Source of the DNA: Octopus bimaculoides
Lineage: Eukaryota
DNA: 33,118 nt
Assembly: GCF_001194135.2 (NCBI RefSeq)
Contig: NC_068994.1
Span: forward strand, 28,622,053 to 28,655,170
Direction of reading: 5' to 3'
The notes under the pieces: model-generated
The model's database searches: none
What the model was told of the DNA's origin: nothing
Seen by the model: only the letters and a program-made list of their open reading frames with translations
Part shown: positions 1 to 32,307 of the stretch, piece by piece
How the letters are laid out: every line of letters starts with the position of its first letter
How positions within the stretch are numbered: position 1 is the stretch's first letter
Position numbers and translations under genes: made by a program

Positions 1-1102
1 CCAGAGATGCCTCAACCTCAGCGCATGCCTGCGTATCTTTAGCCACCCTTTAGTGGCTGTTGACAACAGATAGAGTGCCTTACAAGAGGCCGTCTGCCCT
101 CCCACAAGAATTTAAAAAGCATGCATTCCAACTTGTTTAGCCACGAATCGGGGCACGGCACGACGGTTAGGCGGTAGGTAATGACAAATGGGTTAAACAC
201 ATTTTCCACCTCCACCCTCCCTTTCAGGGATAGCCTCAGCCCAGCCCAGCCCAGGTCTGAGTTATGAACGCCACCCTGCCCGTAACTTCGCTCCAATTCT
301 TCTCTATCTGGAGGCCTGGACCAAATCAGACTCCAAGCATTTTCACCGGATCGTCTGTCCTGCGTCCGACGACGTTGGACAGCATCGACTTGCCTCTCCA
401 GGTGCCGAGCTGCAAACCGACCGACTTATCTCGGTTAATTCTTACTCCTGCTACCTCTTCGTAATCCTTTAGGGCTTCACCTACCCTCTGTAGGTCCTGG
501 TCCCTGGATACGATGACAATGACATCGTCCGTATATGTTGTGACTGACTTTCAATGCCCTAGATCTTGCGGGTCGCCACTCGTAGCCTCCAATCTTCACA
601 GTAGTGACTCGAGAGTCAATACATACAGCAGGGGCGAGAGTGGACAACCTTGAGAACCGAGCGGTCGATATTGAACGGTTCCGAAAAGAAACCGTTCACC
701 GGAACTACCGACTTGATGTTGCTATATAAAGCATTGATCCAACCGCGGAATGTCGGGCCAAAACCGGCCGCCTCGAGGACCGCCGCCAGATGCCGATGGT
801 CTACCCTATCAAAGGCTTTGGATTGGTCCAAATGGACTAATGCCTCACCGTTGTCAGGAATCCTATTTACGCTTTGTAAGGTATAGCGTATAAGGTGGAG
901 ATTATCGTGCATGGTCCTGCCGGGGATGGCGCAGGCTTGCGCCTCCCCGACGATGCTATCCACGATTTTCGCCAACCTTTTTGCTAAAACCTTGGCCAGA
1001 ATCTTCAATTCTGCATTAAGCAGGTTGATGGACCTAATGTTGCCAGTTACGTCTCCCTTGTTTGGGTCATTTCTGATCAGTTCCACCATTCCCTGGCTCA
1101 CG
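1..1102 (-). mobile_element. 5'-truncated, frameshifted Tx1/L1-clade LINE ORF2 (reverse transcriptase); runs off the left edge of the window
   Basis: Minus-strand translation gives LKILAKVLAKRL, QACAIPGRTMHDNLHLIR, LDQSKAFDRVDH, QGCPLSPLLYVLTLE (after a frameshift near 650), YTDD (~525-537) and FKFLWEGRRPLV...GG. These are hallmark L1/Tx1 RT motifs. Confidence 0.92.
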
Positions 1103-1550: not shown

Positions 1551-2261
1551 CTATCTCGACGTTTTCCGTTGGCTCTTTCGTATTTTTTTACGTCTTTTTT
1601 TCTGGTAATAGGTTATCAATTCTGCGGGAGACTTCCCTGATTGGGGGATCACTCTGTATATTCTTAAGAAATTTGTCAGTGCTTCGTCTTTACTTAATTC
1701 ATTCTTCGCTTTTCTTAACGCTCTCTTAAAGGTGTCCACAAATCTTTCTACCTGCCGGTTTAACCTCGGGTGGTAGGGTGAAGGGAAAATATGCTTTATC
1801 GCATGTCTTTTACAGAAGTTCTTGAGTTCATACTCAGAGATCTGCGTTCTGTTGTCTGAAACTAGCGTGTCAGGGATACCGTATCGTGCAAACAATTCGT
1901 TTAAGAACTTTGTAGTTGTCTTAAAGGTTGGTCTATAGCACCTGTAAACCTCCGGCCACTTGGTACAGCCATCAACTCTGATTAGGTAGTAAGCGCAGTC
2001 TACGGGTCCGGCATAATCAATGCGTAACCTAGGCCATGGGTTCTCCATCTCTGGCCACGATTGATATTTACCGGCGGGGCTTTGGCCGCGAGTGCGCAAC
2101 CTCGGCACATTCTCACCAAGTTTTCGATATCTCGGTCTGTAGACGGTCAATAGAAATAACTCCTCATCTGAGCCCTCATCCTTGCCATTCCTGGAAGTCC
2201 GCCGTGAAATCGTTGCTATACACCTTTTTGTAATGTAGTTGGAACACTTTTTTAGATCCAT
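1551..2261 (-). pseudogene. Gypsy integrase (rve core), preceded by a deleted RNaseH/IN junction
   Basis: PWPRLRIDYAGP...VDGCTKWPEV...GIPDTLVSDN...PYHPRLNRQVERFVDTFKRAL, a DDE integrase. Confidence 0.9.
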
Positions 2262-2279: not shown

Positions 2280-4650
2280 TGTGGTCTGTTTGCAATAAAA
2301 AACTTCTGCCATGCAGAAACCAATGAAATTTTTTAACTGCAAAAATAATTGCTAGGTCCTCCTTTTTAATTTAACTATATCTCTTCTCTGCCGCTTTTAG
2401 CGAGCGCGAAACATGAACCACTGGTTTTGTACTTCGTCTTCGTATTTATGAAGTAGAACTGCACCTAATACGTGCTCGGAAGCATCAGATACTACAGTGA
2501 TGACCATTTCGAGATCATAATGTGCTTCAAAAGTGTGCTGGCATTTAGTGGACCAATTACACTTTACTTATTTTAAAAAAATAAGTCGTTCAATGGAGCT
2601 CTTAACTTGTGCATATGTAGCTTTGATAATAGTTTGCTGACCCAAGAAATGCTTGTGAAGTTGGAATATTTGTCGGCTCAGTCATATTCCTTATTGCCTC
2701 TGCCCTCGGCGGGTCAGGACGTCTACCACTTTTATTAAATATTTGCCCTAAGTACTTAATTTGGGGTAGAAAGAATTCACATTTTTCTTCACTCAAAGTG
2801 AACCCGAAAACTTTAATTTTCTTAAACACAGTTTTTATGTGTTCCACATGCTATTCACAAGAATTACTCCTGATCAAAAGATCAAAATATCGTCCAAGTA
2901 CGGGATTGCAAATTCACAATCAGATAACTTAGTATCCATGATTTTCTGGAATATTGCTGGTGCAACTTTTAATCCAAAAGGTAATCGTGTGTATCTGTAC
3001 AATCCTCTGTGTGTATTTATTGGCAAATATTTTGAGTGTTTTCATTTAAAATGTCTTCTGCAGTCGGGAGCGGATGCTGGTATGTTTTTAAGCAGTCGTT
3101 CAATCCTGTAGAGCAGTGGTTCAAAAAAGTTTACGTGCCGGTCTCCTTACAGATTTTTCGAGGATTCACGGTCCCTTATAAAATGCAGGGTAATCAACAT
3201 GGAGAAAATTATATACATTCGTGTACCATAATTTCCGGACTATGAACCGCTCATATCTCATTCGGCATATCTCATTTTCTTTTTTGAAGGCATTATAAAA
3301 AAGATAAAATTCAGTAAACCAATTTAATATCATATATTTATTTCGCATTTATCATATACTACGGGTGTGCATATAAGACTTAGCACAGCTAGCTTTTGGG
3401 TGCACTAATCAACAATAAAGCTTACCTCTCACTAATCCAAAGTGAAATCCAAAAAGTGCATATGAAAATCCTAAGTGCATATGAGCGTTGTTTTGTCCGT
3501 AGATAAATCTCCGCGAATTGATAACCGTTGAGAAGACAGTTCTATCAGAACACGTTGTTATGAAAAACAACCATGCCTTATAAAGCCCAGCCACCATGCA
3601 GGATGCGAATTGGTGGCTGGCAAAGAACACAGTCATGCGGGAACATGCACCGATGAGGATAACGACGGCAAGAGGCATGCAAATGTGTGGACTGCAATAG
3701 TGGAGCGGTGAATCATGTGAGAGTAGAATACCGACAGCACATGCACGATCAACCGTTACACCCGCATATTTTCCATCGGCCAATCACACTTGTTGTACAA
3801 CAAGTGTGATTAGCAGATGAGTGTGTCGGAGTGGCGTGGGTTTTTGAGGCCAACGGCAAAAAAGGATGATAACTTATGAAAAATTGAAAGTCTTGAAATT
3901 TTGTAACGTAACTGTCTCAACCCACCCGTTTTCACGATACTCCAGCTTCCCTTCACGGTCCCCCTAAAGTCGCTCCGCGGTCCCCTAGGGGACCGTGGAC
4001 TCCAGTTAGAGTTACACTGCTGTAGAGAAATCAGCACACAGCCTAATCTTATTATTCTTTTTAAAATACATACCGTGGGTGCCGCCCACTTCGAGCAATC
4101 CACCTTTTTGATGACTCTACTCTTTTTGAGTCTGTCCAACTCTTCATTTACGGTTTCAATTGCCGCGAATGGTACTTTTCTGTTGGCTTTAAATACAGGT
4201 GCAGCGTTTTCACTTACTTGGAAATAGGTCTCTGTCTTTCTACATAGACCTAAATCCTCTGATAACACTTGCGGGAACATTTTTTTCAATTTTTTCATCA
4301 GCAGTTCCGAAGACTTGTTTTTAACGGAACGACCATTTATGTCATTGCAGTAAAAATTTATGGGGAAGTGCCATAAATCGAATAATTCTAACCAATCTGT
4401 CCCAAACAGATTGATTGTATTATCCACAACGAATAATTTTGCTTCGCGTGTCTCTCCTCGAAATGTGACATGAATACATGTTTTACCCATGAAATGTAAT
4501 TTATCGCCTGTTACACCACACGCTATTTTCGCTGTTTTACATAATCTTGGTTTACCAATTTTTTTTCCAAGTATCTGTATTTATAGAGATGTCACTACCT
4601 GTGTCTAACTGAAATTTGGTATTCACATCATTTATTTTTATGTGCACAAA
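2280..4650 (-). pseudogene. Gypsy protease, RT and RNase H, disrupted by the hAT insert, deletions and frameshifts
   Basis: FQLDTGSDISI (~4590-4615), KWAAPTVC, CADFST|GLNDCL split by the insert, RLPFGLKVAPAIFQ..PYLDDILI (~2885-2980), IKYLGQI, VSDASEHVLGAVL (RNase H, ~2460-2500). Confidence 0.9.
3114..4019. mobile_element. 906-bp non-autonomous hAT (Charlie/Buster-like) element inserted in the Gypsy RT
   Basis: Exact 8-bp TSD CTGTAGAG at 3106-3113 and 4020-4027, close to the NTCTAGAN Charlie preference. Ends read CAGTGGTTC... and ...GTTACACTG. Removing the insert restores RT CADFSTGLNDCL. Confidence 0.88.
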
Positions 4651-8485: not shown

Positions 8486-9718
8486 TTAAGGTTTCTTATT
8501 AGCTGAAACAGCAAACGGGAAAACCCCATTTTCCAGCAGGTAGCGCTTGAAATGAACACATTTTGAGAAAATTTCTTTACGAATATTTAATGCGCCAGGC
8601 TTAGCATAGTTCTTATGAATTTTGATTCACTCTGTGATGCAGATTTTGCAGTGCCCGCTCCCATTAGTATATGGGCTTGGATGTTCTATCATCTTCCACC
8701 TGATATCATATGGAGGTCTCTTGATCTTTGAAGTGTCACACATGGCCAGCGATGTGACAAACTATCTTTCTGGAACTCTGTAGGATGACTGGTGGTTGCA
8801 GAAGCGTTGCTTGAAATCTGTGCTGGCCAATCTGATATATTTCCAGGTTTGGGTACTGGCTATATTTGCATTCCTGGTGTATCTCTGGTAGGCTCCAGGC
8901 CTGAGGATGTTGTTGGTGTCACTGGTGTTGATATTGTCATTATGGCGGTTGGTCGAGCGGTGCTAGTATGTCTGTCGTCGCCATAGTTGTTATCACTGTG
9001 GTTGTAGTCTCTGGTCATATGGTTGGTGCTGATGCTGCTAGCGGTGGTGTGGGTGCTACTGCTGGTAACATAGCGTGTGAGGTCGGTTACTTCCTCAGTG
9101 TCGATGATACTAGTCTGGTCATCATCTCTGGCTGTGGTGATGGTTCTGTGGTCATCAGTTACCTCCTCTGTGTCATTGGTACCTGACTGGTCATCATCTC
9201 TGGCTGTGGCATTTGTACTGGGATCGATGGCGCTAGAGTTGGTGATTCTGCTACCATTGTTGTTGGATGTTACATCGCTGGTAATGTGGTTGCGAGGTCT
9301 AGGTATCACCATAGCCTCATAGATGACTCCTTCGGCCTCGCATCGGCCCCCTACTGTACAGTTCTTGTACACTCTGCAAGAGCAACCTGCCTCCTCCTTT
9401 GATTTGTGGGTGCTATTAAAAATACTTTTTATGTTTGGGGCACAACTAAAGGAGACCTTTAGGTTGTGCCTGTCAAATAAATACCTGTATCTGTGTGAAG
9501 TGTTTGTCTATTAATCTGAAGAATATCCTTCCCACACAAGTCTTGACATTGAGTGAGAAGGGTGGGGCAAACCAAATGACGTTTCGGCGGCGCCTCCTTT
9601 TCCAGGTGCTAGGGCCTGGGATGCAATCCTTAAACCCAATAGATACCAGTGCCTTGTTGTAGTAGGGGGCAGTGGTGCCGAAGATATATTTGGCTAGAGG
9701 ATAGGTTCAGGATCCTCA
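8486..9718 (-). mobile_element. Penelope-like element: RT C-terminal region plus GIY-YIG endonuclease, frameshifted
   Basis: RILNLSSS..F..TAPYYNKAL...RRRRNVIWFAPPFSLNVKT.VGRIFF.LIDKHF...KVSFSCAPN...CSC...C..GG.C...GVIYEAMV ... KYIRLASTDFKQRFCNHQSS ... YDIRWKMIE...CKICITE...LNIRKEIFSKCVH. Confidence 0.88.
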
Positions 9719-10141: not shown

Positions 10142-10954
10142 NNNNNNNNNNNNNNNNNNNNNNNNNNNNNNNNNNNNNNNNNNNNNNNNNNNNNNNNNNN
10201 NNNNNNNNNNNNNNNNNNNNNNNNNNNNNNNNNNNNNNNNNNNNNNNNNNNNNNNNNNNNNNNNNNNNNNNNNNNNNNNNNNNNNNNNNNNNNNNNNNNN
10301 NNNNNNNNNNNNNNNNNNNNNNNNNNNNNNNNNNNNNNNNNNNNNNNNNNNNNNNNNNNNNNNNNNNNNNNNNNNNNNNNNNNNNNNNNNNNNNNNNNNN
10401 NNNNNNNNNNNNNNNNNNNNNNNNNNNNNNNNNNNNNNNNNNNNNNNNNNNNNNNNNNNNNNNNNNNNNNNNNNNNNNNNNNNNNNNNNNNNNNNNNNNN
10501 NNNNNNNNNNNNNNNNNNNNNNNNNNNNNNNNNNNNNNNNNNNNNNNNNNNNNNNNNNNNNNNNNNNNNNNNNNNNNNNNNNNNNNNNNNNNNNNNNNNN
10601 NNNNNNNNNNNNNNNNNNNNNNNNNNNNNNNNNNNNNNNNNNNNNNNNNNNNNNNNNNNNNNNNNNNNNNNNNNNNNNNNNNNNNNNNNNNNNNNNNNNN
10701 NNNNNNNNNNNNNNNNNNNNNNNNNNNNNNNNNNNNNNNNNNNNNNNNNNNNNNNNNNNNNNNNNNNNNNNNNNNNNNNNNNNNNNNNNNNNNNNNNNNN
10801 NNNNNNNNNNNNNNNNNNNNNNNNNNNNNNNNNNNNNNNNNNNNNNNNNNNNNNNNNNNNNNNNNNNNNNNNNNNNNNNNNNNNNNNNNNNNNNNNNNNN
10901 NNNNNNNNNNNNNNNNNNNNNNNNNNNNNNNNNNNNNNNNNNNNNNNNNNNNNN
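10142..10954. other. Assembly gap (N); further gaps at 12035-12639, 22382-22602, 28077-28086, 30194-30247, 31309-31972
   Basis: N runs, several of them bordered by microsatellites. Confidence 1.
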
Positions 10955-11876: not shown

Positions 11877-11999
11877 GAGAGAGAGAGAGAGAGAAAGAAG
11901 GAAAAAGAGAGGGAGAGAAAGAGAGACAAAGAAATTTAGGGAGAGTTGATGATGTTTTATTAAAAGTTGTAGTGTTGATAGCTGCAATGGCAGTAATGA

Positions 12000-12034
<35 letters not shown>
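11877..12034. repeat. (GA)n tracts and GA-rich low-complexity DNA
   Basis: (GA)n at 11877-11894 and 12004-12034, the latter running into a gap. Confidence 0.95.
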
Positions 12035-12899
12035 NNNNNNNNNNNNNNNNNNNNNNNNNNNNNNNNNNNNNNNNNNNNNNNNNNNNNNNNNNNNNNNNNN
12101 NNNNNNNNNNNNNNNNNNNNNNNNNNNNNNNNNNNNNNNNNNNNNNNNNNNNNNNNNNNNNNNNNNNNNNNNNNNNNNNNNNNNNNNNNNNNNNNNNNNN
12201 NNNNNNNNNNNNNNNNNNNNNNNNNNNNNNNNNNNNNNNNNNNNNNNNNNNNNNNNNNNNNNNNNNNNNNNNNNNNNNNNNNNNNNNNNNNNNNNNNNNN
12301 NNNNNNNNNNNNNNNNNNNNNNNNNNNNNNNNNNNNNNNNNNNNNNNNNNNNNNNNNNNNNNNNNNNNNNNNNNNNNNNNNNNNNNNNNNNNNNNNNNNN
12401 NNNNNNNNNNNNNNNNNNNNNNNNNNNNNNNNNNNNNNNNNNNNNNNNNNNNNNNNNNNNNNNNNNNNNNNNNNNNNNNNNNNNNNNNNNNNNNNNNNNN
12501 NNNNNNNNNNNNNNNNNNNNNNNNNNNNNNNNNNNNNNNNNNNNNNNNNNNNNNNNNNNNNNNNNNNNNNNNNNNNNNNNNNNNNNNNNNNNNNNNNNNN
12601 NNNNNNNNNNNNNNNNNNNNNNNNNNNNNNNNNNNNNNNGAACACCATAATTGTGGTTTTATTTTTTGCTTTCTTTAATACGTACATACATATTTAGTAG
12701 AAAGTGGGTTATACATCTTTAGATTGTATACCTGACTTTCTACTAAAAGATTAAAGAAATTGACGGAACGCTGAACTCCAGACTAAACAACTTAAACAAC
12801 ATTTATTTACTTGGTAAAACATACATATCTTTTAGTTATACATCTTTAGAGGTGAGAATAACGAGCTGTCGAGTATAAGACCGAAAGATGTAGAGACAG

Positions 12900-14371: not shown

Positions 14372-14480
<109 letters not shown>

Positions 14481-14888
14481 CATTTCCTAATCTTAGGAAT
14501 ATTTAACTGCTATTTCTAGAAATTCAAGGTTCCTTCATTGAGTGTGGTGAACATAGATATACATCAGTTAATATTCAGTTATCTAACCCTTTCCACTCCC
14601 ACAATGTGTTTTGGAAATGCATGAACATCACAACTTGCCCTTTTCATGTTTTCAAAAAAGTGGTTGTATTTATTATTGTATGTTCTTTTTATTGTTTATT
14701 TGTTTATCTAAAGCTAAAATGAATTATTTTATTTTCTACCATCTACAGAGCGTGTCGAGAGCAGCAGTGTTTTGTCAACTGACCATTCCATGAATGAGGT
14801 AGGATCTGTCTTACATTCCTACTTCTTGTAAAAGTGTTCAAGTCATCAAGTGAACCAAGGACTAGACTCAAGTGACCAACAACACATC

Positions 14889-17012
14889 ATGCTATTCGAC
14901 TGCGATGAGTGTATGAATCTTTCGGTTCAAAACAGTACATCAATGCCATGTAAAAAGAGAATTAATTCTTACAATGACAGCAATCCATATAAATGCCAGA
15001 TGTGCAACATCAGTAATAAGGGTGGCTGCTGTGGAGATGATAATGAGGAGCAAGGGGAATGTATCAACCCTTCATCCTGTGGAAGTACATCATCATATGG
15101 AGGAGACTGCTCTATGTCATGTGCGGAAAAGAACTGTAACTTTCAACTACCCCCACTACCAATGCCACCACCCTTATCAGGAAGATCACCAATGCAGGGT
15201 AATCCACTTCCACCCAAGCTGTTTGACTGCAAGATCTGCTGGAAAGCATTCAGTCAGCGATCCCATGTTAGTGTTCACAAACAGATCCATTCTGCAGTTT
15301 TGCCCTACAAGTGTGATCTGTGTGAAAAGAGCTTCCCACGTTTGCAAAACTTGGAACGTCACAAGAAAACACACGAGGATGGCAAATTGTTCAACTGTGA
15401 AGTTTGCAGTAAAAGTTTCCGCCAGCGATCGCATCTCAAGGCTCATACCCGTGTGCATTCAGGGGAGAGACCATTCAAGTGTGAGGTATGTGGTTATGCA
15501 TTTTCTCGAAATGGCAATCTGGCCAGGCACAATAAAATGCACAGATCCAAAAAGAAACACTTGTTTGAAAATTCATCATCAGAAAATGCTCTGGTTCTTC
15601 CACTTAAAAATGCTTCGAAAAAGAATGGCAAGTTACACAAAAATGGTTTTCTTAACAAAAATACAAACAAAGACTGCTTGATTTACAAGAAAGGAAATTT
15701 ATTAGACTGTGCCATTTGTTGGCGTGTTTTCAGCCAACGTTCACACGTTAGTGTCCATCGGCGTATTCACAAGGCTGTTCAGCCTTATCAGTGTTCACTT
15801 TGTGGCAAATCTTTTACCCAGTATGGCAACATGCTAAGACACAAGCGTCTACATATGGGCGAACGTAGGTTTGTCTGCAATGTATGTCCAAAAGCCTTTA
15901 CACAGCGTACACATCTGAAAGTGCATCAACGACTGCACACAGGAGAAATGCCATTTAAATGTGGCATTTGTGGTTTCTCTTTTACCAGGAATGGCAATCT
16001 CATGCGTCACATGCGGCTTCATTCAAAGTTAGGGCAATTTGGCCCTCCTGCAACGAACATTCCTGAGACTGGACAAGCTGTGTTCCCACAAAACCTGCAT
16101 TTAGATGAAGACGACAAGGATGGAAGTAACTGCAACATGGGTTTGGTGACTAATCAAGGTGAGGAGTGCGACCATGCAGATGACACAGACAACATGCAGT
16201 TAGACTGTGGTGCTTGCTGGAGGAACTTCACACGTTCACAGCAAGTGAGTAGCAGCAACAAATGGATGCAAACATTTGCTTGCAACATCTGTGGCAAAGG
16301 TTTTACCAACACGAATGACTTGGACCGCCATCAACGTGTACATATGCCTGGTGCCAAGCGATTCCCATGTGAAGTGTGCCACAAGACCTTCTCACAGAAA
16401 TCCCATATGAAAGCTCACATGCGGATACACACTGGAGAGCGACCATACAAATGTGAAGACTGTGGCTATTCATTTTCCCGTGTCGGCAACTTGATACGTC
16501 ATAGGCGTGGGAACAAGAAGAAAGGAAAACGGTGGAGTTGTGTCAACAGACGCAACCTTGAATCAGTTCCTATTAGCATCCCTAATACACCCATCAGTAT
16601 CACTTCAGCCACCACTACCTCCACTACAAACAACAACAACAACAACAGCAGTAACAACAGTAACAATAACAGCAATAACGGTGACAGCAACAACAATATC
16701 CAGTCAAGTGCTGACACCAAAGAGTTGCCCAGAGAAACTTCTCAACAAAACCTTCCCACCCAGATGGTGACCAGTGGGGTGGAAGAGGGCAGTATCACCC
16801 CTGTCACTAGCAGTGTTGCTAGCAGCAGCAACAGTAGCAGCAGTGAAAACCAATCAGGTACCAGCCCTCTCACTCACCAAGTTGGTATCCCACATCAGAT
16901 GTCTGTCCACCCACGACACTCCAACATGTCACACCACACCAGTGTGACTTCACATCATAGTAGCAGCTCATTGGGACAGGATCACCAGTTAGGGTTGTCT
17001 TCTGCACAGCAG

Positions 17013-17044
<32 letters not shown>

Positions 17045-17543
17045 GCAGCAGCAACAACAACAACAGCAACATGCATCACTTCCACAACTTCCTCCACCCC
17101 CACCTCCACCCCCACCCCAGACACATCACCAGCATCAACCACAAACGCCACACCCAACAGGTATGGGGGGTCATCACCATCCTCATCACCCCCATCAACC
17201 GCAACAACAGCATCATCATCATCAACAACAACAACAGCAACAGTCCCATTCCCACCATCAATCACTCAGCCTCCCACCCCACCACCCAACCAGCGTCCTC
17301 TCGCAACACACAAATGTCTCCACACATCCACTTGGCATGCCACATCATTCCAGCCTTCCACGTCACCTCAACATGATCCAACCCCACCCAGCGACCGTGC
17401 CACACCAGCTCAACGTGCTGCAGCAACACCATCACCACCAGCATGCTGGTGCTGCACCGCACCAGCTTGGCATATCACAACAGCTTAACCTCCCACACCA
17501 CATCAATGTCCCACTCTACATCAATGTACCAACCTCCACATAA
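14889..17543 (+). CDS. C2H2 zinc-finger protein: Cys-rich N-terminus, 10 canonical plus 2 degenerate fingers in three 4-finger modules, N/S/Q/P/H-rich C-terminal tail
   Basis: Uninterrupted ORF; the first ATG is at 14889 and the frame opens at 14832. Finger modules lie at 15222-15542, 15702-16022 and ~16200-16514 with (T/S)GE(R/M)P linkers. It includes Q21 (17007-17069) and P9. An upstream exon cannot be excluded. Confidence 0.93.
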
Positions 17544-20228: not shown

Positions 20229-20626
20229 TAGCTTCAATTGTCATTTACAGGAATTTGTAGACAAAGATATACTAAAAAAACCATCCAGCAAGCTAAAAGT
20301 CTTCAATGTTTTCAGTGCCAATAAACATAACATACCAAGACATTTTCTATCTTTTATGAATTTGACTATCAGGAACTAACTGACATCACAGGACAAAAAT
20401 ATCACCAGCGTCAACTGCACAGTGGCTTGAATCTTATGATGAAGGCTATAAGATCTTCACTGATATCATTGGTGTCATTTCTTAACATCACATCATAACA
20501 TGGACTCAATCCCTTATCATACTATGATTTTTACAATATCATGTTGCAAGTCTTGTTATGTCTTGTTTATAAATGGACCCTAGTATAAACTATAACATTG
20601 GGCTTGACAATCTCAAACAATGTGTG

Positions 20627-21450: not shown

Positions 21451-23274
21451 CTGCACATTTGTACATACACACACTCACACACACACACATTACACACACA
21501 AAACATCATTAGATAGTTTCAAATCAGAAAAGTAGTATCACAAAGAAAATAATTCCTTCCAGCGGATTTGCATATGCAAATAGTGATTGTATAGGGAACA
21601 CATTGTTTTATTTGTTACTTATTTATTTCATAGTTATTAGTAGATCAGTCTAAAATCTGTGGCTTATGTACTTCAGAAACATTAAGTGATGTATATAATT
21701 ATCAAAATAGAGAACCTTGACAAGTGTAGCCATTTCGTAAAGTACTTTCTGGTTAACAAGAGATGCTCTTGATTCCTCACATAAGGATTGATTTTGTACA
21801 TTTTCTTTCACTCCTTCATTTAAAACTTAATTTACTTTGGAAAACACTTTCCCATTTTCTTTCTTCCCATCAAAGAGAAACTAACTAAAAAGCAAAACAC
21901 TTTTCATCATCAGGTCCTTGCAATAACAAGAGACACCTGTACATATATTATTTAAGGCACTTTACAAAATTTTCCAATTGATGCCTTCTCTGTTATAGTA
22001 TAGGTGATTTTTCTGACTTGAGTCTATTTGATGAATGCCTACATGCATGAAATTTCAAGTTATCCGTATTTGAATTTTCAGTTCTTCACTCTGTTCTCAA
22101 AAAAATTTATGTATCTGTTGATAAATATGTGTATATATGGCTCTGACCACCTGCATGTTTATATATGAATATAGAAATTTACACACACACACATACACGT
22201 ACACACACATGCGCACACACACACACACACACACACATTCATTGAAATTCATTCATATCAGTCTTTCTTTTCTAGCAACATTTCATATATTATTAATCAT
22301 ATTGATTAAAAAAGGAATTTTATATCTGAATAATTATTTTCTGAGTAAGACCAGGAAAATATAGACTGATCTTTGCTGTCCNNNNNNNNNNNNNNNNNNN
22401 NNNNNNNNNNNNNNNNNNNNNNNNNNNNNNNNNNNNNNNNNNNNNNNNNNNNNNNNNNNNNNNNNNNNNNNNNNNNNNNNNNNNNNNNNNNNNNNNNNNN
22501 NNNNNNNNNNNNNNNNNNNNNNNNNNNNNNNNNNNNNNNNNNNNNNNNNNNNNNNNNNNNNNNNNNNNNNNNNNNNNNNNNNNNNNNNNNNNNNNNNNNN
22601 NNGAGATAATTAAGGTCACCAGTCCAAATGATACAACATATTGAATTGTTTTAGGACATTTTATACAAACACACACACGCGCACGCACACACACATGCAC
22701 ACACACACTCACACACACACAGACACACACACACACACACACACATGTATATAATGTATGTGGGCTGACCAAAACGCTGTAAGTGAATTTAGTAGATGAA
22801 AATTTAAAAGGCCACAACTGGAGGTAGAAATGAGTCTATGTTAACAAGGGTTGTAAACAAAAATCCTGAAATGGAATTCTATTTGACAAATTTTCTAGGC
22901 AAGATGGAGTTATCTTCCTCAGATCTGTTCTAGTTACATCTGAAAGGGTCAGCATAATGGATGATTACTTTTCAGTAGTCATCAAGCAGAGAATTCCATG
23001 TTTCTAACATGAATTTTCTCTGATGAGCAACACACATACACATTTCTGGTTTCTGAGTCACTCACCTTGATACCTGATTATGCTTTCTTTTTTCCTAATA
23101 ACTGTGTATTCATTTGTTTATTTGTTTCCAGTTTAAAAAAATATTTATTTATTTGTTTATGTTTCTGAAGAGTTGGGATAAATTTTGAATCCAGTGAAGA
23201 ATATGTAAAAGAGATGAACAGCTGATCAAGAAATCCTAATTTTTGTCTTTGATACCCGGTGACTGGAATATCTA

Positions 23275-30701: not shown

Positions 30702-31060
30702 CTGATGCTGGTGTTGCATAACTAGGACCTGTGCCAGTGGCACATAAAAAGCACCTTTCGAGCATTGGGCCTCATGGAGGGAATGACAAATGACTGAGAC
30801 CTTTGGCAATATGCCATGCATGAGAAGAGGACCCATCGAGCCAAGTGAAACGGTAGTCATGGCAGATACTGGTGTCACACAACTGGCACCTGTACCAATG
30901 ACACATAAAAGCACCCATTACACTCTTGGAGTGGTTGGCGTTAGGAAGGGCATCCAGCTGCAGAAACCATGCCAAATCAGACTGGAGTTAGGTGCAGCCC
31001 TTCAGCTTACCAGCCTGGTCAAACTGTTCAACCCACGCTAGCATGGACAATAAATGAGAA
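30700..31060 (+). mobile_element. SINE/RTE-associated tail with an internally duplicated block
   Basis: GGAGTGGTTGGCGTTAGGAAGGGCATCCAGC...CCCACGCTAGCATGG. The block ACCTGT(G/A)CCA(G/A)TG(G/A)CACATAAAA(A)GCACC occurs at ~30728 and ~30889. Confidence 0.65.
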
Positions 31061-31308: not shown

Positions 31309-31972
31309 NNNNNNNNNNNNNNNNNNNNNNNNNNNNNNNNNNNNNNNNNNNNNNNNNNNNNNNNNNNNNNNNNNNNNNNNNNNNNNNNNNNNNNNNNNNN
31401 NNNNNNNNNNNNNNNNNNNNNNNNNNNNNNNNNNNNNNNNNNNNNNNNNNNNNNNNNNNNNNNNNNNNNNNNNNNNNNNNNNNNNNNNNNNNNNNNNNNN
31501 NNNNNNNNNNNNNNNNNNNNNNNNNNNNNNNNNNNNNNNNNNNNNNNNNNNNNNNNNNNNNNNNNNNNNNNNNNNNNNNNNNNNNNNNNNNNNNNNNNNN
31601 NNNNNNNNNNNNNNNNNNNNNNNNNNNNNNNNNNNNNNNNNNNNNNNNNNNNNNNNNNNNNNNNNNNNNNNNNNNNNNNNNNNNNNNNNNNNNNNNNNNN
31701 NNNNNNNNNNNNNNNNNNNNNNNNNNNNNNNNNNNNNNNNNNNNNNNNNNNNNNNNNNNNNNNNNNNNNNNNNNNNNNNNNNNNNNNNNNNNNNNNNNNN
31801 NNNNNNNNNNNNNNNNNNNNNNNNNNNNNNNNNNNNNNNNNNNNNNNNNNNNNNNNNNNNNNNNNNNNNNNNNNNNNNNNNNNNNNNNNNNNNNNNNNNN
31901 NNNNNNNNNNNNNNNNNNNNNNNNNNNNNNNNNNNNNNNNNNNNNNNNNNNNNNNNNNNNNNNNNNNNNNNN

Positions 31973-32307
31973 TCTTATACGGTTGTGGTCTTTCATTGCT
32001 GGTCATCTATGTTATCGTCGCATAACATATCATGTATATCATCCATTGATATATATATTTGTATGTTCGACCGTGTGACGCGTTTAAATAAAAGGAGTCC
32101 TGTTTTTCCATTCGTCACCATTTCTCCTTTTATGAGTTCGCACGGTCATCCCTTACAATTGGTGACCCCGACGTCGGTCTTCCCTTACAATTGGTGACCC
32201 CCGACGTTGATTCGTTCATACAGCCCTTCTGATCTGTACAGCCAACGCGAGCCTGTTCACACAGTTTCCCTTACAATTGGTGACCCCGACGTCGGTCGTA
32301 CCTTACA
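31973..32307 (+). mobile_element. LTR 3' part with three LTR-end/tRNA-Trp PBS units
   Basis: CCCTTACA-AT-TGGTGACCCCGACGT at 32150-32174, 32182-32207 and 32268-32292. The final CCTTACA ends at 32307. Confidence 0.75.

Follow-up and report, generated by a model that had tools for sequence, protein, structure and literature searches.

A twelve-finger C2H2 zinc-finger protein of Octopus with an alternating contact pattern predicted to favor GA-rich DNA

The window, i.e., the whole 33-kb stretch of Octopus bimaculoides DNA that we analyzed, has about 36% G+C, six N gaps and numerous microsatellites. Its forward strand carries a long open reading frame that encodes a zinc-finger protein. The best protein match was P0001 from O. 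vulgaris ('finger 665-like'), with 97% amino-acid identity. The gene comprises the following features.

14850-17543, forward strand: open reading frame of 897 codons, uninterrupted, with the finger region (15222-16514) inside
14889-17543, forward strand: first in-frame ATG to stop, with an A at -3 of the ATG
14892-15050, forward strand: Cys-rich N-terminal stretch, compared by eye with fingers F1 and F2
15222-15542, forward strand: module 1, predicted site 5'-GAG AGA GAG AGA-3'
15702-16022, forward strand: module 2, predicted site 5'-GAG AGA GAA AGA-3', i.e., GAGAGAGAAAGA
16200-16514, forward strand: module 3, partly decayed, with an F11-F12 pair predicted to read GAGAGA
16515-17540, forward strand: low-complexity tail, N/S/T-rich to about 16877
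17007-17068, forward strand: poly-Q segment of the tail
17091-17118, forward strand: poly-P segment of the tail, followed by a His/Gln-rich stretch
16877/16878, forward strand: candidate splice donor CAA/GTTGGT, the donor of the O. vulgaris gene model
20373-20482, forward strand: homologous to the final exon in the O. vulgaris model, with an AG acceptor present

In the O. vulgaris gene model, the start codon is the ATG at 14943 (MPCKKR). Module 1 is 100% identical between the two Octopus species and module 2 99%, and amino-acid identity is about 97% throughout, spacers included, so that this comparison is powerless to single out the helices. On the evidence here, the gene is intron-less across the finger region; an exact-product look-up of genomic records for P0001 and for the window ORF returned no entry. 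The poly-Q, poly-P and His-rich part of the tail is in open frame but lies downstream of the donor used in the O. vulgaris model. At the putative last exon (20373-20482), a 1-nt indel between the two Octopus species shifts the frame, and the peptide is not conserved. Judged by this frame-shifting difference, the segment is probably no genuine conserved coding exon. At the other end of the protein, the stretch encoded at 14892-15050 contains 'LFDCDEC' and, 31 amino acids on, 'PYKCQMC', the same lead-ins as in F1 and F2, without His ligands. Pfam gave no match for this stretch, which probably consists of relics of a decayed (fourth) module.

Translation of the ORF and scripted finger extraction yielded 12 C2H2 fingers, grouped as three paralogous modules of four. 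Pfam assigned 11 zf-C2H2 (PF00096) stretches in the ORF (E = 8.9e-61), and finger families only. The fingers and their recognition helices (positions -1 to +6) are listed below, all on the forward strand.

15222-15290: F1, module 1, QRSHVSV
15306-15374: F2, module 1, RLQNLER
15390-15458: F3, module 1, QRSHLKA
15474-15542: F4, module 1, RNGNLAR
15702-15770: F5, module 2, QRSHVSV
15786-15854: F6, module 2, QYGNMLR
15870-15938: F7, module 2, QRTHLKV
15954-16022: F8, module 2, RNGNLMR
16200-16268: F9, module 3, RSQQVSS, both His ligands lost (dead finger)
16275-16343: F10, module 3, NTNDLDR
16362-16430: F11, module 3, QKSHMKA
16446-16514: F12, module 3, RVGNLIR, last His replaced by Asn (HRRGN)

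All four zinc ligands in C-X2-C-X12-H-X3-H spacing, together with DNA-type contact residues, are present in 10 of the 12 fingers. A 4-aa insertion follows F9 in O. vulgaris. In DNA-binding arrays, five-residue linkers of the TGEKP type connect the tandem fingers. Inside modules 1 and 2 every linker has five residues; the canonical (S/T)GE(R/M)P form occurs only at F3-F4, F7-F8 and F11-F12. Four of the six linkers within modules 1 and 2 (SAVLP, EDGKL, KAVQP and MGERR) depart from the canonical sequence, so that some fingers may not dock canonically. The modules are separated by spacers of about 50-60 aa. A first-pass annotation of this DNA had listed the residues at helix positions -1/+3/+6, placed the finger region at 15222-16514 and named the first three of these linkers as non-canonical. 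Our translation and finger script reproduced the residues exactly, and the limits were right as well, 15222 being the F of F1 and 16514 the end of F12; among the linkers, MGERR joins the three already named.

Throughout modules 1 and 2 and in the F11-F12 pair, fingers of the type Q/H/x at positions -1/+3/+6 alternate with fingers of the type R/N/R, with Q/N/R in F6. We compared this pattern with a reference set drawn from two database searches, namely the 265 poly-ZF proteins that matched best, with 5,885 fingers in all. R/N/R made up 0.36% and Q/H/[AVSTIL] 2.2% of these fingers. Runs of at least three adjacent alternating fingers were found in the orthologue P0001 only and were absent from the 264 other poly-ZF proteins. 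The alternation of Q/H/x and R/N/R is beyond chance.

Fingers at the same position of a module resemble each other most, with 17/23 identical residues for F1/F5, 12-15/23 for F3/F7/F11 and 13-14/23 for F4/F8/F12. Identity was 11-17/23 among odd fingers and among even fingers versus 5-9/23 between odd and even ones. Read from these finger alignments, the modules are positional paralogues, and the alternation is inherited and not chance-assembled. Probably, a two-finger unit was first doubled into a four-finger module, and the module was triplicated afterwards. Between modules, synonymous sites have reached saturation (pS 0.8-1.0), with 55% of nucleotides identical; an origin of the pattern by recent duplication or gene conversion was therefore rejected. 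F1 and F5 have identical helices despite four synonymous codon changes, which points to selection on the DNA-contacting residues, not to recent copying. For module 1 versus module 2, pN was 0.22 at contact positions and 0.30 in the remainder. Together, these substitution patterns argue for an old triplication, with contact residues kept by selection.

The DNA specificity given here is deduced from recognition rules and from engineered fingers with matching helices; any role in vivo is wholly inferred. In published helix-triplet tables, QLAHLRA is assigned to AGA, QRANLRA to AAA and DSGNLRV to AAC, RSDNLVR and RSGNLTR to GAG, and QSSNLVR and QSGNLTR to GAA. A survey of natural fly fingers likewise found well-defined preferences of R-1 for G and of N3 for A. 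It has also been published that the simple code can be overridden by within-finger context. F4, F8 and F12 share the core R-G-N-R (positions -1, 2, 3, 6) with RSGNLTR, and F6 has the Q-G-N-R of QSGNLTR. F3 and F11 have Q-1, H3 and A6 in common with QLAHLRA, and F3 also L4. Helices with A6 or V6 (QRANLRA, DSGNLRV) serve triplets with a 5'-A, so that it is reasonable to take A as the 5' base of the odd fingers' triplets.

With the C-terminal to N-terminal fingers written 5' to 3', module 1 is predicted to read GAG-AGA-GAG-AGA, i.e., (GA)6, module 2 GAG-AGA-GAA-AGA and module 3 GAG-AGA-GC(A). The first-pass annotation had derived GAG NGA GAG NGA and GAG NGA GAA NGA for modules 1 and 2, in agreement with the published finger-triplet tables. 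With (GA)n, all 10 of the specified bases agree in module 1 and 9 of 10 in module 2, compared with at most 6/10 for (CA/TG)n and 4/10 for (TA)n. Because the TG strand of CA repeats meets all six G contacts, specificity may be broader; moreover, A6 and V6 form no hydrogen bond, and the odd fingers hence specify their 5' base weakly (A or T). A two-finger period, i.e., 6 bp, would be what a reader of 3 bp per finger requires to stay in register with a dinucleotide repeat. From helix residues and recognition rules, we give a probability of about 0.5 to our main reading, namely that the protein prefers GA-rich, GAGAGA-containing DNA.

GA tracts are found at a single locus of the window, about 2.8 kb upstream of the gene.

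11877-11934, forward strand: imperfect GA-rich tract with exact matches to both predicted 12-mers; GAGAGAGAAAGA matches exactly at 11887-11898
12004-12034, forward strand: perfect (AG)15 tract, ending at an assembly gap (N run 12035-12639)

The gap truncates the (AG)15 tract, and its full length is therefore not readable from the assembly. These are the tracts that the first-pass annotation had placed at 11877-12034. Its further remark that GA microsatellites are abundant is contradicted in this window: among 45 perfect dinucleotide runs, 24 are CA/TG, 19 TA and only two GA, the rarest class. The suggestion that the protein autoregulates its gene found no support, there being one GA locus, 2.8 kb upstream and adjoining a gap. 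The microsatellite nearest to the gene is (CA)53 at 14374-14480, some 400 nt before the first ATG. Its TG strand would meet the six predicted G contacts (6/10 bases), and it may be a weaker target that lies much nearer to the gene than the GA tracts.

In searches for relatives, a query in which both the fingers and poly-N were masked, run against 5.8 billion clusters, returned P0001 as the sole match. An exhaustive phmmer search with module 1 matched 191,693 proteins with fingers; of the 150 best of these, only P0001 showed module-level identity, at 69% over three stretches. Other matches were generic poly-ZF proteins with 26-38% identity over the full finger region and 32-47% over module 1. 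Orthologues outside Octopus were sought among the matches of the full finger region, the masked query and the module 1 phmmer search, and none was found. The next Octopus match, P0053, was 35% identical, and no close paralogue was seen; the 33-kb window has no second ZNF ORF. The gene has so far been seen only in Octopus. The saturated divergence of its modules suggests that it is older than this species sampling shows.

Pfam detected no BTB, KRAB, SCAN, ZAD or other effector or repressor domain in the ORF. In the upstream ORFs the Pfam scan likewise found no BTB or other effector domain, only fragments of transposable elements (TEs). A sequence search of the PDB returned generic arrays only (ZNF568, Aart, CTCF, PRDM9), which have no bearing on specificity. 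Large expansions of C2H2 genes have been described in cephalopods (PMC12513265); that paper does not mention binding motifs or repeats. Genes of this expansion are lineage-restricted and have numerous close paralogues, which are often clustered. Literature searches for a cephalopod GA-binding factor and for the dinucleotide-repeat composition of octopus genomes yielded nothing relevant.

Several known systems invite comparison. GAGA factor (Trithorax-like) pairs a BTB/POZ domain with just one C2H2 finger, flanked by basic regions. The octopus protein resembles it in its predicted GAGAG-type target and in the Gln-rich C-terminus of the open frame. However, the octopus protein has 12 fingers and no BTB domain, and splicing may remove the poly-Q part; both structural hallmarks of GAGA factor, the BTB/POZ domain and the single finger, are thus missing. 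The parallel with GAGA factor drawn in the first-pass annotation is therefore a poor one, although its observation that a BTB domain is absent was borne out by Pfam. As for the Q-rich C-terminus to which it pointed, the poly-Q segment is present in the open frame but lies beyond the donor of the O. vulgaris model.

CLAMP (Drosophila CG1832) consists of one N-terminal finger, a Gln-rich region and six tandem C-terminal C2H2 fingers (PMC4945028). It binds long GA repeats directly, and more fingers give a longer motif (PMC4945028); its domains have been described as conserved in insects. Like CLAMP, the octopus protein combines multiple C2H2 fingers with a Gln-rich region (in the open frame) and GA-repeat reading (predicted). 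In contrast to the 1+6 fingers of CLAMP, its fingers are arranged 4+4+4 on long spacers and followed by a low-complexity C-terminus. Compared by architecture and predicted target, CLAMP appears to be the closest functional analogue, better than GAGA factor; the two proteins are likely of independent origin.

Engineered polydactyl fingers (Barbas modules) provide the nearest helix matches, i.e., for AGA (QLAHLRA), GAG (RSDNLVR, RSGNLTR) and GAA (QSSNLVR, QSGNLTR), and the engineered protein Aart was among the best PDB sequence matches. Engineered polydactyl proteins have uniform canonical TGEKP linkers, whereas the octopus linkers are partly non-canonical and helix residues +1, +2 and +5 differ. 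With generic poly-ZF proteins (ZNF665-, ZNF271- and ZNF112-like) the protein shares the C2H2 fold, and they are the source of the automatic name of the orthologue. Unlike them, it has three spaced modules instead of one long array, lacks KRAB, SCAN and ZAD domains, and carries a contact pattern unique among the reference set. By its sequence features we would class the protein as a new C2H2 transcription factor, restricted to its lineage and with a predicted CLAMP-like specificity.

We propose that the protein would act as a sequence-specific C2H2 transcription factor built from three copies of a four-finger module that arose by duplication of two fingers. Within each two-finger unit, the finger with Q-1, H3 and A6 or V6 would read AGA, and the next one, with R-1, N3 and R6, would read GAG. 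One module could thus follow the major groove over about 12 bp of a GA alternation, with TC on the other strand. Module 3 would have kept only the pair that reads GAGAGA and one divergent finger. Held on flexible spacers of about 50-60 aa, the three modules may together bind long or clustered GA tracts with avidity. An effector function would fall to the low-complexity tail, which is N/S-rich and possibly Q/H/P-rich. It seems unlikely that the protein is a dedicated GA-microsatellite reader in vivo. Equally tentative is the wider proposal of a dedicated reader evolved in Octopus, its 6-bp periodic code phase-locked to the repeat, as a further independent origin beside GAF/Psq and CLAMP.

Other accounts of the gene have to be weighed against a preference for GA-rich DNA. 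It might be an ordinary lineage-specific C2H2 factor that uses a subset of its fingers, e.g., F3-F4 and F7-F8, on a unique, purine-rich, non-repetitive site, any affinity for GA microsatellites being incidental. Canonical linkers at F3-F4, F7-F8 and F11-F12 only would fit such use, as would the departures from a pure GA code (GAA in module 2, NTNDLDR in F10, the dead F9), the influence of within-finger context on specificity and the rarity of GA tracts in the window. However, the two-finger periodicity has been kept over three old module copies, and the alternating pattern is absent from the 264 other poly-ZF proteins; both are hard to explain unless a periodic site is read. We regard this account as possible, if doubtful. 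Alternatively, the fingers may chiefly bind RNA or protein, or the gene may be decaying, which would make a code-based DNA prediction irrelevant. F9 and the N-terminal relics have indeed decayed, F12 is without one ligand, and the C-terminus is defined inconsistently between species. Against this stand the uninterrupted 897-codon ORF, ten fingers with intact ligands and DNA-type contact residues, and the near-complete identity to O. vulgaris even in the spacers, and we hold it to be very improbable.

The protein could also belong to the cephalopod C2H2 expansion and silence a GA-rich segment of a TE or satellite in the manner of KZFPs, without activator or pioneer functions of the GAF/CLAMP kind. 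Its occurrence in Octopus only, the large C2H2 expansions of cephalopods (PMC12513265) and the TE fragments around the gene are in line with this. Yet Pfam found no repressor domain, the 33-kb window contains no further ZNF ORF, the contact residues are conserved, not diversified, between the old modules, and the low-complexity tail looks more like an activation region. Such a silencing role is hence improbable.

In flies, GAF and CLAMP have key roles as pioneer and architectural factors, and to our knowledge no equivalent reader of GA repeats has been described in molluscs. Were the octopus protein a dedicated reader, it could act at the GA tracts of cephalopod genomes as a pioneer or boundary factor. 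Binding to (GA)n, if true, would offer an entry point to the use of microsatellites in cephalopod gene regulation and a clean natural case in which a code with a two-finger period fits a dinucleotide repeat. Otherwise, the gene would be one more lineage-specific zinc-finger gene.

The remainder of the window contains the following features.

616-1101, reverse strand: RVT_1 reverse transcriptase fragment (Pfam), retroelement debris
1551-2261, reverse strand: rve integrase fragment (Pfam), retroelement debris
3810-4490, reverse strand: ORF adjoining the retroelement fragments, no Pfam match
8860-9372, reverse strand: ORF, no Pfam match
10142-10954, 12035-12639, 22382-22602 and 31309-31972: assembly gaps (N runs)
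32143-32207: tandem repeat

The start of the ORF at 8860-9372, CTVGGRCEAEGVIYEA, resembles the lead-in of a GIY-YIG nuclease and is followed by Thr/Asp-rich internal repeats. The tandem repeat at 32143-32207 consists of two copies of a 32-bp unit, CGGTCATCCCTTACAATTGGTGACCCCCGACGT, with 93% matches, and adjoins an RT-like ORF that begins at 30969 and is interrupted by a gap.
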